From assembly GCA_047495785.1 (NCBI GenBank), contig JBLDXI010000017.1, forward strand, positions 2,418,001 through 2,482,000: a stretch of 64,000 bases of DNA, written 5' to 3'. The position numbers were made by a program, and so were the translations under genes. Of the stretch, positions 46,405-58,144 are shown piece after piece. Under the pieces are notes generated by a model. It did no database searches. It was given only the letters and a program-made list of their open reading frames with translations, and was not told where the DNA came from. This DNA is from Lepidodermella squamata. Taxonomy: Eukaryota; Animalia; Gastrotricha. Each line of letters begins with the position of its first letter. Positions within the stretch are counted from its first letter, which is position 1.

Positions 46405-48021
46405 TCACCAAAAACTAAGAACAACAGCAGCGCCTGGCTTCTCAGGCGATGCGACAACAAGTCGAACGAGTGAGCTCCAAACATGACTAATGAGTATAGG
46501 CTGGCGATGCAGGACATTCAGTTGTTTCCCGTCGCCACTTGAGTAGTCCCAGACAACGATTCGTTTTCGGTCGCTGGCGGATATCAGTTTTTGCGCGTCC
46601 ATCAAAATGCACCGGACGATGCCAACGTGATCGCCCACCATTCGACGCAGCAAGGCACATTTATCCAACGACCAAATACACACAGCTGAGTCGGATGCCC
46701 CAGATGCTGCGACATTCGTGGCAATGCAGCACGCGACACAATACTGAAACAGAGAACAAAGAAATAAATTCGAGATTCGAATTCAGGTGGCTTAAAAGTG
46801 AGATAATTCAAAATCAGACTGGGGCGGTATGGTAAAATCATACTTTTCATACTAAAAAGACCATTCATCAGGAAAATAAAGAATCCGCCTTAATATTATT
46901 CGTATACGTACCACTTCACTCGAACGCAAGTGACCGCGACCAGTAGCAGTGCACCTGGCCGTGTTGATATCCCAAAATCGAACCGAGCCATCAGCTGAAC
47001 CCGAAATCAGCCGCTTATCACTCGCGAAGCAACAGCAAGTTACAGCTTCATCGTGAAGTTGATTCGAGAACAAAACTTTGGTCACTTGATGATTTTGAGG
47101 TCGAGCACTCAGTCGCAGATTTGAAGTCGTAGTTTGACCAACGGCAATGTTACGCTGCGAGAACCGAATGACAGCCAATTTGCGATCCCACCCGCCAGAA
47201 GCGACAAGGTCGTTACCATATCCCACGAGACATTCAACTTCGTCTTCATGGACGTTGAGCCGTTCTATCAAAGCTTGTGATGTCAGACTCCAGAATTCAA
47301 TGGTACCAGATGCGGTTGCGATGACAATAACGTTGTTGAACAAAATCATCTTCGTTACTGGTTTCCCGACTTGCATCGCAGCTTGAAGCATGCCGAAGGT
47401 GGCGTCGAACGTTCGAATATGACCGTCAAGACTTGATGTGATGATAATCGGGTCAGCATCTGGGTCTTCATTCGGGTTGCCACTTGAGTGCATCAAAATG
47501 ACATGGCTAACTTGACCAGATTGGTTCGACAGCGTGTAAAGGAGTTGGGCTGAAACCAGGTCGTAAACATTCAGGGAACCATCTTCAGACCCGGTAACGA
47601 CCAATCGGTTGGAACAGCCAAGAGCCGTCACTTGCTGAGAATGACCTTTAAGTAGAGGACCGACAGCATATCGACCGGTCTGCCAGTTTCGATTGCAATG
47701 ATAGGCAAGGGCGAAAATCTTCTTGAATTTCGGGATATCACCTCGCTGAAAACAGGTTGGACTGAAGAATGGACTCAGGTGCGACGGAGTTGTTCCCAGC
47801 TCGAGCGGTGGTTCAGACTCCAGATAGCCGTATTTCTCACTGAAATCGTATCGCTTACATAGCAGCTTCCAAAACAAGTCATTATCGGTGAGGTTAAACC
47901 AGCTCTTGCAACACAAAGTCGAGCAGCAGAGAGTAGGAACGTCAATGTAGGCGGTCAGCACGCGAAAGCTCAGATCAGAAGGTAATGCAGACAGTAAATC
48001 AAATGAGGCTGCTTGTGGCAT
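46405..48021 (-). CDS. F-box/WD40 protein (intron 46744-46911)
   Basis: F-box LSALPSDLSFRVL...VPTLC...CKSW...LFWK. WD repeats GHSQQVTAL...VVTGSEDGSLNVYD and LISGSADGSVRFWD. Confidence 0.9.
46810..46876 (-). ncRNA. Box C/D snoRNA, SNORD31/snR67-like (F-box coding intron)
   Basis: CTGATGA...ATGA..ATGATTT-TACCATACCGCCCCAGT-CTGA. Guide complementary to 28S ACTGGGGCGGTA. D box 70 nt from 3' splice site. Confidence 0.85.
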
Positions 48022-48095
48022 TCCAGCTATCTGCAAGTAAAAACGCTCATTAATCAACTGTAAAAAAAATTGTCAAATTCCGCGAAAATTGAATG

Positions 48096-55400: not shown

Positions 55401-58144
55401 ACCAGGGCCTTTCCCGACCGGGCCGGTGTTGAAGCGGTAGTAGATCAAATGTTTCAAGTCTTTGCACATTCGAATTTGCTTCATCAGCTTATACTTGTAG
55501 CGGTACATGCCGGTGAGCTGACCGACGTGGGCAAACGAATATTGCAAGCCATCGGCCAACTGATAAGCGTCGACATTGCCAAGTCTGAAAAGTCATACAA
55601 AATTCCATATTAAAACTGAAAGTTAACGGTAATCGTGAACCAAACTAATGAGATTAGTGAAAATCAGATACCAACCGGGGTTACAATCAATGGACACTCA
55701 GATAACAGGGAACAGTGTTCATCATTTAAAAATGTGCCAAAATTGAGACATGAAAAACAACTAACCGGTATTGCACGTGACTGTCAACGATCAGCTTGGT
55801 CATGCGCAAGATTTCACGGCACAGATGGAACGCGTTTCCGAAACGGGACTTCTTACGTTCCTTGGTTGTGAGTGTCTTGACGGGCTTCAAATTGAAGTTA
55901 TAGTCGAGGTGAAGGTAATTCAAATTCTTGCGGTGAATGAGCAGGTTCAGCATGTTGTAACCCTGCCGACAAACTTGCAAACCAGCTTCTACCCAGTCGA
56001 GCTTGGTCGACTGGAAGAATTTGGTGGATTTGAATGATCGGAACAGGTAGCGCTTCTTCTGAGGCTTCGGCGGCCGATGATGGAGTTCATTGAGAACGAA
56101 ATATTTCAGCAGCTTTTGGTAGGAAACTCGAACCTTCACCGGCATACCAGCGGGGCAATGTTCGCGATACCTTTACATTAGAAACATTCTCAGTGACATT
56201 GCATAATTAGTAGGAGAGCAGATGATGTAATTGCTTCAAAATCAGAGTGGTGGTGCAATATGTTTTCATTGCGATCAATTTTGGCGTGAGTGCAATCATC
56301 ATCAAAAACTAAAAACTAAAGGAAAACGGCGTTTATACTTACCATGACTTGACAATAGGAACATCCAAAGCTCGACGCATTCGACCAGACCGGAGATTGA
56401 ATGGGCGGCAAGCCCACATGAGGGCAATGCCACTAGCAGTTTTCTCGGTGTAAAGCGGCAAATCATTCAGGAATGGTTGATACGATTTCGGTAGTTCAAA
56501 ATCGGCGTCCAAATCTTCGGCCAAAAGTTGAGTTTCGCTCTGATTCTGTAATTAAAATGCAACTTTTAAAACGAAGTCAAGTAGATGGGATAATTCAGAA
56601 TATAAAAAATTTCAGAGTGGTGGTGCAGTTATTTTCATGATTGATTCAAAGAAAGCCATTCGATAATTATCATCACAGAAAAATATTGAAAACTAAACAT
56701 TTGTGTGATCACTAACCTTGAGAGCATGGCGATGAGCAATCGGATTGATCAGCGGGTCGAAGTAAAATGCAGGCAAGTCGGGGTCCTCAGTCTTGATGTA
56801 GACGACGTTCGGAGTGTGATAGTTTATCAAATGAACTTTGAAGGGAATGTTGTTGTACAAATATGGGAATGCGATACGATACTCGGTGCGAATAGGCTGG
56901 CGAATGATGATCTTGTTGACGTCATTGAACTCGTTCCAGTCTTCATCGCTGATGACGCTATCACGGACGAGTGGTTCAAATTTAGGACCACCGGGAATGG
57001 CAACGTTCAGTGCTTTAGCAGTAAAAAATGACTTCAAGTCGAAGAGGTGAAAATAGTTATCATCCAGCAGATCCGTGAGCAACTGATTTCCCAACCGGTA
57101 AAGAGCAGACATCACAGCTAATTCAAGATACCAGCGGCGATACGATGGACCATTGACCATCTTCGAGTCGACGAGGGGCTTCGGGTCGTAGAACCATTCA
57201 GCAACAGCTCTATCTTCCTCTGGATCCAGCTGAATCTGAATTGCCTCAAGGGGTTCAACATCCAGGATATTGTCAGCGTAATCAAGTGGAGGTTCTTCGT
57301 CGTCGAAAGGAGGAAATCGCATTCGCTTGAAATGCCGCCGATCGCGCTTCTCGCGACGCATCATAATCCACATTGTGCTAGATAACGTGAAAATCAAGAC
57401 AAATTCTCACAATAATCACAATAGCTTACCCCCATTGAGCAATGTACACAGGTTCGATCACCCAAGGAATTTCGTTGACGAAGGTGATAGCTCCAGTAAT
57501 ATGGTAGAGAACACTGACATCTCTAATCTGTTCCCAAGGCATCGGCATGTTCTCCAACAGCTTCAAAATGGCATGCGGCATGTATTTGAGAGCGCCAAGG
57601 TAAACTCGCTTGTCATTGCGAAATTTTCTCGATGTCATGTCACCATGGTCGCGAATGATCTTTCGCAGATGCTCAGCAGGCATATCTTCTTTCTGAGCTT
57701 CAACGAAGCCAAACTTCCGTTTCTCGGAATATCGCTTGGACTGTAAAAGCTGCCATTTCACCGCTAAATAAAGAGCCGATCATACATAAGAAACAACACG
57801 ATTTAAAGTATCATCAAACCTTTATCTTTCATTCGATCTTCGTCCATTTGATCTGAAGACATCCCTGGATGGCCAGGATAATATCCATTACCATCAGCGC
57901 CCTGGGCGCCTGGCCGCATGACCGGCGGGGGCTGAGATAAGAGCTGCGTTGGAGGTAATTGCATTTGAACAGGAATACCAGATGCCGTTATAAACTGACC
58001 TCCGGACGTGACAAACGCAGCGCCTGGGTTTTGCATACCTGCAACCATAAATTGCGGTTGCGCAGGTACCATTTGTGGTATCCCTCCGGTGACCATAATA
58101 GGTCGCCCATCGGGACCAATAATGAACTGAGGAGGCAAAGACAT
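49412..58144 (-). CDS. PRPF8: Pre-mRNA processing factor 8 (11 exons)
   Basis: Near-invariant Prp8 sequence throughout ([15 protein letters not shown]..., [19 protein letters not shown]-terminal Jab1/MPN domain ...DREDTFA*). Confidence 0.99.
50118..50183 (-). ncRNA. Box C/D snoRNA, SNORD31-like (PRP8 intron 10, 50051-50218)
   Basis: ATGATGA-TTGATGTCCCCAA-ATGA..TTGATTA-TAATATATCGCCCCAGT-CTGA. Confidence 0.85.
50976..51039 (-). ncRNA. Double-guide box C/D snoRNA: SNORD59/snR54-like (18S) + SNORD55-like (28S) (PRP8 intron 9)
   Basis: GTGATGA-CCTTTCGTTCTA-TTGA..ATGATCT-GTTCACTTTGGAGAA-CTGA. Complementary to 18S AGAACGAAAG and 28S TCTCCAAGGTGAAC. Confidence 0.88.
51879..51945 (-). ncRNA. Box C/D snoRNA, SNORD38/snR61-like (PRP8 intron 8)
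   Basis: ATGATGA...ATGA..TTGATTA-TACTCCCAGTTCTGCTA-CTGA. Confidence 0.88.
53221..53292 (-). ncRNA. Box C/D snoRNA, SNORD60/snR48-like (PRP8 intron 7)
   Basis: ATGATGA-TTTTTATTCTGACACACCTCTTGT-ATGA..ATGATCT...CTGA. Complementary to 28S CAAGAGGTGTCAGAA. Confidence 0.82.
54118..54182 (-). ncRNA. Box C/D snoRNA, SNORD25/snR56-like plus second guide (PRP8 intron 6)
   Basis: ATGATGA-TATTTACAGACCTGTT-ATGA..CTGATTA-TTAACCGCTACAA-CTGA. D' guide complementary to 18S AACAGGTCTGT. Confidence 0.87.
55660..55730 (-). ncRNA. Box C/D snoRNA, two putative guides (PRP8 intron 5)
   Basis: ATGATGA-ACACTGTTCCCTGTTAT-CTGA..TTGATTG-TAACCCCGGTTGGTAT-CTGA. D' guide pairs with 28S TAATAGGGAAC with one G-U. Confidence 0.8.
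56238..56307 (-). ncRNA. Box C/D snoRNA targeting the 18S GTGGTGGTGCA motif (SNORD32/33 region) (PRP8 intron 4)
   Basis: ATGATGA-TTGCACTCACGCCAAAA-TTGA...TGCACCACCACT-CTGA. Confidence 0.83.
56608..56681 (-). ncRNA. Box C/D snoRNA targeting the 18S GTGGTGGTGCA motif, paralog of the previous one (PRP8 intron 3)
   Basis: GTGATGA-TAATTATCGAATGGCTTTCT-TTGA...TGCACCACCACT-CTGA. Confidence 0.83.

Follow-up and report, generated by a model that had tools for sequence, protein, structure and literature searches.

What do the long introns of the gene for the spliceosome core protein PRP8, and of the F-box/WD40 gene behind it, contain in the gastrotrich Lepidodermella squamata, and why are they so uniform in size? 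The stretch examined here, called the window below, comprises 64,000 nucleotides (nt) of contig JBLDXI010000017.1 (positions 2,418,001 to 2,482,000, assembly GCA_047495785.1). A first-pass annotation made from these letters alone had described an array of intronic small nucleolar RNAs (snoRNAs) of the box C/D class. Judged from the sequence, the introns very probably hold 14 compact box C/D snoRNA genes of eight families, for which the introns of a housekeeping cluster with broad expression would serve as an expression vehicle and whose guides are predicted to pair with ribosomal RNA (rRNA).

The criterion for a box C/D snoRNA was a RUGAUGA box at its 5' end together with a CUGA box at its 3' end, ~60-90 nt in all. 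Recomputed in this way, the layout agrees with the earlier description: a single element in sense orientation sits in every one of the 14 long introns, which measure 163-181 nt, with box C beginning 36-45 nt past the donor and the end of box D lying 66-79 nt ahead of the acceptor. This fixed geometry is established. Eight of the elements are in PRP8; the six that had been given to the F-box gene do lie in its introns, five of them in a non-coding leader and one in the coding sequence (CDS). Box D is CUGA in 14/14, and the span from C to D is 54-73 nt. The RTGATGA motif that had been claimed for every box C is perfect in 11/14 and has one mismatch in 3/14. Internal D'/C' pairs, also reported earlier, are degenerate but visible, and they are kept in the relative described below. 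Base-shuffled introns reproduce the C/D layout in 0-0.3% of trials (2000 shuffles per intron). The density of C..D pairs is 1.4 per kilobase in the array and 0.10 per kilobase in the rest of the window, a 14-fold difference, and ten background matches that were inspected show no sign of a canonical intron position.

PRP8 introns 1 and 2, of 56 and 52 nt, have no C/D pair, just as first stated; the remaining eight measure 168-181 nt. Introns elsewhere had been described as mostly 45-60 nt. With a rough intron predictor, 13/27 introns in the rest of the window fall at 48-61 nt, which is indeed the mode, but other size classes exist. The long class may be read as a normal 50-nt intron plus one snoRNA and its required spacing.

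The PRP8 CDS runs on the minus strand from 58144 to 49412 and encodes 2413 amino acids (aa) in a frame that is open after removal of 10 GT-AG introns, leaving 11 exons. Homologue searches identify it by its PROCN, RRM_4, JAB and PROCT domains, with identity up to 92%, and in a tree of the C-terminal part the window sequence falls outside a supported clade of three rhabditid nematodes, so that a nematode origin is not favoured. The single predicted intron of the PRP8 leader (~58262-58163) has no snoRNA inside. Splicing could be followed in RNA-like contigs from two runs, which cover nine long introns within 47950-53900; the other five long introns lie outside this range. Eight of the nine are spliced out exactly at the predicted ends, and for the ninth a loose end of 12 nt at 48933 agrees with the predicted joint. 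Transcription and splicing of the hosts are established in this way.

The window contains no ribosomal DNA (rDNA), and the guides were scored against a panel of 80 eukaryotic rDNA loci from metagenomes; a scan of viral contigs yielded no usable complete rDNA. Known methylation sites were taken from the tables in PMC11550049 and PMC8583080, and the methylated base is the partner of the fifth nucleotide before D or D' (PMC8162545). A guide of this class is expected to be an antisense element of 10-21 nt immediately ahead of D or D'. In all 14 elements, antisense elements adjoining D or D' form 10-16 base pairs (bp) with conserved rRNA of other eukaryotes, and this complementarity is likewise established. 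For placing the motifs in human and yeast numbering we relied on Rfam registers where these matched, and otherwise on the known motifs themselves. When each guide was shuffled 40 times, ten elements beat all shuffles; elements 5 and 11 are borderline, being equalled by 2 and 3 shuffles, and element 3 was equalled by 4.

The predicted sites in 18S rRNA are Gm1328 (elements 1 and 2), Gm1490 (element 4) and Am1031 (element 7); those in 28S rRNA are Cm2804 (element 7), Am1871 (elements 6, 12 and 13) and Gm4196 (elements 8, 9 and 14). Pairing with conserved rRNA and register both confirm the guides of SNORD25, 31, 32, 38, 55 and 59 types that the annotation had named. Its ‘SNORD32-33’ copies (elements 1 and 2) fit the SNORD32 site but not that of SNORD33. 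Its assignment of element 5 (53225-53287) to SNORD60 (human Gm4370, yeast Gm2793) was rejected: the register is that of the snoR1 consensus (Arabidopsis Gm2792, yeast Gm2791), two bases off the SNORD60 site. The guide of element 6 pairs over 11 bp in 80/80 rDNA loci, but the panel had been selected on that motif. The second guides of elements 1, 2, 5, 6, 8, 9 and 11-14 are weak or unconserved, and we claim none of them; the D guide of element 4 may fit 28S Am1524 and is not conserved. D guides possibly directed at 28S Gm1522/Am1524 were seen at 54122-54140 of the window and at L146:9620-9675 of the relative, in different snoRNA families and with modest pairing to the panel.

Elements 3, 10 and 11 have predicted sites of another kind. 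Element 10 contains a 16-nt block that is identical in the relative and could form a 13-bp duplex, with 1-2 G-U pairs, with 28S rRNA just ahead of the Am2946 motif. Past its degenerate D' box, both species have a 9-bp hairpin, unlike in sequence between the two, by which the D'/C' boxes are brought together. The fifth nucleotide of element 10 falls at the position of Arabidopsis Am2935, and that of element 3 at the next base. Both elements pair best given a C in the rRNA at that position, a variant that occurs in the panel, and together they predict that the 28S rRNA of this species reads CUAACAGGGAAC immediately ahead of the Am2946 motif. Barring an indel, the predicted target of element 11 would lie two bases away from human Am2401. 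The predicted sites of elements 3 and 11 are absent from the human, yeast and Arabidopsis tables consulted for comparison.

Other options for elements 3 and 10 were tried and set aside. For element 10, placing the D' box at TTGA gave no target, a role as a guide for messenger RNA (mRNA) found no target among window sequences, and resemblances to U14, U22 and U4 were considered and dropped. For element 3, a target on 18S would require two G-U pairs, and one on the 5' part of 28S fits a single panel locus. For the D guide of element 3 (55664-55680), of which the relative has just a GTTGGTA core, the variable V2 region of 18S is a possible target.

What happens to such introns over time can be seen in a distant relative, whose syntenic locus was found in ENA metagenome contigs (F-box protein 60% and TFIIE-alpha 57% identical); a second relative was looked for and not found. 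Its gene order is ACSF4, PRP8, F-box, TFIIE-alpha, URB1. Comparison of PRP8 introns between related species had been proposed, and in this one relative the layout, boxes and guides are kept, but cargo has moved and two introns are lost. There, too, the two short PRP8 introns are empty; in 18/18 long introns examined, of 170-204 nt, one element is present and its box D lies 67-83 nt from the acceptor. The two species have kept boxes and guides alike, and their flanks have diverged; the guide of element 3, for instance, is identical in the relative, where the family has two copies. On this comparison, boxes and guides are evidently under purifying selection, with turnover of snoRNAs among introns.

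The turnover takes several forms. Two of the six long PRP8 introns common to both species have different cargo: the window's SNORD38-type intron has an element-3-family copy in the relative, and its SNORD59/55 double-guide intron has a SNORD31 type. A counterpart of element 7 was not found in the relative's contigs. The snoR1 type occurs twice in the relative's F-box leader, and two extra SNORD32-type snoRNAs lie in its PRP8 5' leader introns (contig L145:1765-2166). The relative is without the introns of elements 1 and 5. Their positions are common to amphioxus and a bird, hence ancestral, and they were therefore lost in the relative; gain of these introns together with their snoRNAs in the window lineage is ruled out for the same reason. 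Within the window, elements 8 and 9 are identical in 56/57 bases with unrelated flanks, on either side of the gene boundary, which points to a recent copy or conversion. The two-species comparison shows that snoRNAs copy into and replace one another among neighbouring introns, so that the host would provide expression with no specific regulatory link.

The F-box leader of the relative has features of its own. It shows a tandem duplication of exon-plus-intron units in which SNORD38-type introns alternate with element-11-type introns (L028:54-918, L146:10053-10702), and in contig L145 the assembly seems to have merged the units of this repeat. The SNORD38-type copies of the relative (L146:10094-10156) have a second D' guide that pairs over 11 bp with 28S adjoining the Am1871 site; it is lost in the window's three copies.

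Table 1. Predicted snoRNAs and associated features of the window, in order of transcription; rRNA sites are predicted and given as human / yeast where two are listed.
Feature	Position	Strand	Intron	Guide, predicted target and type	Further details
snoRNA 1	56612..56676	-	56716-56546	D guide, 18S Gm1328 (human) / Gm1271 (yeast), SNORD32 type	11-12 bp; 0/40 shuffles; TtnuCD21 same register; intron absent in relative
snoRNA 2	56242..56302	-	56342-56171	D guide as in snoRNA 1, SNORD32 type	same family in same intron of relative
snoRNA 3	55664..55725	-	55765-55585	D' guide, 28S base 11 nt ahead of yeast Am2946	12-bp duplex, fully Watson-Crick given rRNA C there
snoRNA 4	54122..54177	-	54218-54047	D' guide, 18S Gm1490 / Gm1428, SNORD25 type	12-13 bp; 0/40 shuffles; D' guide identical in relative
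snoRNA 5	53225..53287	-	53332-53156	D' guide, yeast 25S Gm2791 (plant snoR1 register)	10-11 bp; 2/40 shuffles; snoR1 consensus same register
snoRNA 6	51883..51940	-	51983-51813	D guide, 28S Am1871 / Am1133, SNORD38/snR61 type	snR61 register
snoRNA 7	50980..51034	-	51076-50906	double guide: D' 18S Am1031 (SNORD59), D 28S Cm2804 (SNORD55 type)	10 bp and up to 16 bp; SNORD59 and Afu_294 registers
snoRNA 8	50122..50178	-	50218-50051	D guide, 28S Gm4196 / Gm2619, SNORD31 type	conserved in same intron of relative
snoRNA 9	49001..49057	-	49099-48932	SNORD31 type	
snoRNA 10	48763..48835	-	48872-48692	guide fits 28S at Arabidopsis Am2935 (snoR18)	variant C box; degenerate D' box CCTA, then 9-bp hairpin
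snoRNA 11	48544..48602	-	48644-48468	D' guide, 28S A 40 nt after Am2363	10-12 bp; 3/40 shuffles; guide and register conserved in relative
snoRNA 12	48307..48363	-	48399-48237	SNORD38/snR61 type	
snoRNA 13	48100..48154	-	48197-48031	SNORD38/snR61 type	imperfect C box; same family in last leader intron of relative
snoRNA 14	46814..46871	-	46911-46744	SNORD31 type	12 bp; 0/40 shuffles; conserved in same intron of relative
AATAAA	49200..49205	-			from sequence; probable PRP8 polyadenylation signal
Non-coding spliced leader, F-box/WD40 gene	48022..49159	-			five 39-68-nt exons and five snoRNA introns of 163-181 nt; four joints seen in RNA-like contigs, plus one loose end
F-box/WD40 CDS	46405..48021	-			ATG at 48021; 482 aa; two exons; one 168-nt intron; orthologue 60% identical

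PRP8 and the F-box leader are transcribed and spliced, as was seen for 8-9 introns. If the elements are snoRNA genes, the later steps would follow the known pathway. The core proteins fibrillarin, Nop56, Nop58 and Snu13 would load onto each element during splicing, because box D lies ~70 nt before the acceptor, in line with the position rule for splicing-dependent intronic snoRNAs (PMC8162545). The lariat would then be debranched and trimmed to an RNA of ~60-80 nt, with which fibrillarin would methylate the base of the rRNA that pairs with the fifth nucleotide ahead of D or D'.

Several points weigh against this account. Pairing was scored on the rRNA of other eukaryotes; element 10 fails the planned shuffle test (39/40), element 3 does not stand out in it (4/40), and the targets of both were assigned only after the fact. 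Box C deviates at 48835 (ATGATGT), 48154 (AGGATGA) and 46871 (CTGATGA), and terminal stems are <=2 bp in all 14 elements, such a stem being common in the class though not obligatory. The Rfam search that the first-pass annotation had named as a check gave no match at the gathering threshold, in the window or at the relative's locus (best 33.5 bits against a threshold of 70), which speaks for repeat relics or splicing signals in place of RNA genes. We consider that explanation exceedingly improbable, since eight unrelated guides each pair with a different conserved rRNA segment beside D or D', and since guides are conserved between species and flanks are not. The weak Rfam matches are to C/D snoRNA families in 16/17 cases, positioned on the elements and aligned on the guides; SNORD31, snR61, SNORD59, snoR1, TtnuCD21 and Afu_294 all scored below the gathering threshold. 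The elements appear to work like these families, of which they are putative members; outside the guide their sequence falls short of the Rfam thresholds, so that shared descent with the named guide families is putative as well.

Some copies may also be decaying. An array that is only partly active, in which redundant or imperfect copies (e.g. elements 1, 9 and 13) are decaying pseudo-snoRNAs spread by intron-to-intron copying, would suit the copy numbers (three for the SNORD31 type, three for the SNORD38 type, two for the SNORD32 type), the imperfect C box at 48154, and the second SNORD38-type guide that the relative has and the window's three copies have lost. It seems to us rather unlikely, given that D box, guide and spacing are intact in 14/14 and that allelic changes spare element 6, where the 5' flank in a variant contig shows 8 changes against 1 within the element, in the D'-C' spacer. 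Decay of single copies can be accommodated by the reading as 14 snoRNA genes. A different objection concerns the meaning of the host. The annotation had tied rRNA methylation to expression of the spliceosome core; in this form the array would be a selected regulatory link, with methylation following expression or splicing of that core via PRP8. It is true that PRP8 remains the host in two distant species that also share neighbour genes, and that in both the 5' end keeps SNORD32-type copies while the last intron keeps those of SNORD31 type. The cargo shifts nevertheless: it differs in 2/6 shared long PRP8 introns, two introns are lost and one family is relocated. The array also extends into the leader of an unrelated gene, and the PRP8 loci of amphioxus, a bird, a mosquito, an acanthocephalan and a marine contig, some of them partial, have no such array. 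The link is improbable on these grounds, and the introns are better regarded as an expression vehicle.

Most of this organization has been described before: introns with a single snoRNA set at a constant distance from the acceptor, cis-duplication between neighbouring introns, and drift from one host of broad expression to another; snoRNA mobility is covered in PMC3511168 and PMC2653536. Vertebrate housekeeping and ribosomal-protein clusters (PMC2653536, PMC13736004) likewise place a single sense snoRNA in each intron, in a fixed position upstream of the 3' splice site, with paralogues spread to neighbouring introns by cis-duplication. Here, by contrast, the host is PRP8, the cores are 54-73 nt without terminal stems, and the introns are reduced to ~170 nt, so that the 5' distance is fixed as well. 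The F-box leader, a chain of 39-68-nt poorly conserved exons between snoRNA introns, resembles non-coding hosts of the GAS5/UHG type, but it belongs to a protein-coding mRNA, that of F-box/WD40, to which it is spliced, and its start lies ~40 nt past the PRP8 polyadenylation signal. In guide and fifth-nucleotide register the elements lead to the same rRNA positions as SNORD32, SNORD25, SNORD59, SNORD38/snR61, SNORD55, SNORD31, snoR1 and snoR18; unlike in SNORD59 and SNORD55, both guides are joined in one RNA in element 7. Broadly expressed hosts and non-homologous snoRNAs in orthologous introns also match the constrained-drift model (Hoeppner and Poole 2012, PMC3511168), although the turnover here is within one gene cluster of two related species and comes with two ancestral introns lost. 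A search of the literature, with limited coverage of subscription papers, turned up no paper that names PRP8 as host of snoRNAs. Drosophila prp8 may host a small Cajal body-specific RNA (scaRNA), for which no confirmation was found in the literature. The mosquito prp8 has mir-988 in an intron (L152:6120-6202), so a different small RNA is hosted in insects.

Around the array (37946-61107), ACSF4 is divergent from PRP8, which is followed on the same strand and at tight spacing by the F-box/WD40 gene, an unknown gene, TFIIE-alpha and URB1/Npa1. This order is conserved in the relative and is operon-like. An unpaired acceptor AG at 49161-49160 lies ~40 nt past the PRP8 AATAAA, with a similar acceptor in the relative, and an RNA-like contig terminates at 49215, near the AATAAA. 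The short gap between polyadenylation signal and unpaired acceptor suggests a precursor common to PRP8 and the F-box leader, which trans-splicing would resolve; no spliced-leader or read-through reads were seen at the PRP8/F-box boundary in the RNA-like contigs. Near the 3' end of the leader, which is 282 nt long when spliced, lie two short upstream open reading frames (ORFs) of 7 and 4 codons that could dampen translation or induce decay. A joint reading, which we offer tentatively and lean slightly against, would make PRP8 and the F-box gene one trans-spliced operon, with one promoter for at least 14 snoRNAs and several mRNAs; a strict 170-nt snoRNA intron module would have its cargo swapped wholesale; and 28S would be methylated at plant-known positions absent from the human table consulted (Am2935 and Gm2791 types) or at positions in no table consulted (elements 3 and 11).

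Elsewhere in the window, a predicted 163-nt intron at 19436-19598 is without a C/D pair and could hold an H/ACA RNA or nothing, and a perfect A+T-rich palindrome with arms of ~25 bp lies near 2425-2482, within a predicted 130-nt intron. An exact-match lookup of the window ORFs in a protein collection found none present, and megablast of the window against phages gave no matches.

No new mechanism is revealed here; the gene layout is well known, and PRP8 as a host is previously unreported as far as we found. The array adds snoRNA annotation to a phylum whose genome paper (PMC11660948) has no mention of snoRNAs, and it provides eight guide families with exact predictions of methylation sites. 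For the evolution of such genes, the two species provide a clean case of snoRNA turnover at constant intron geometry.

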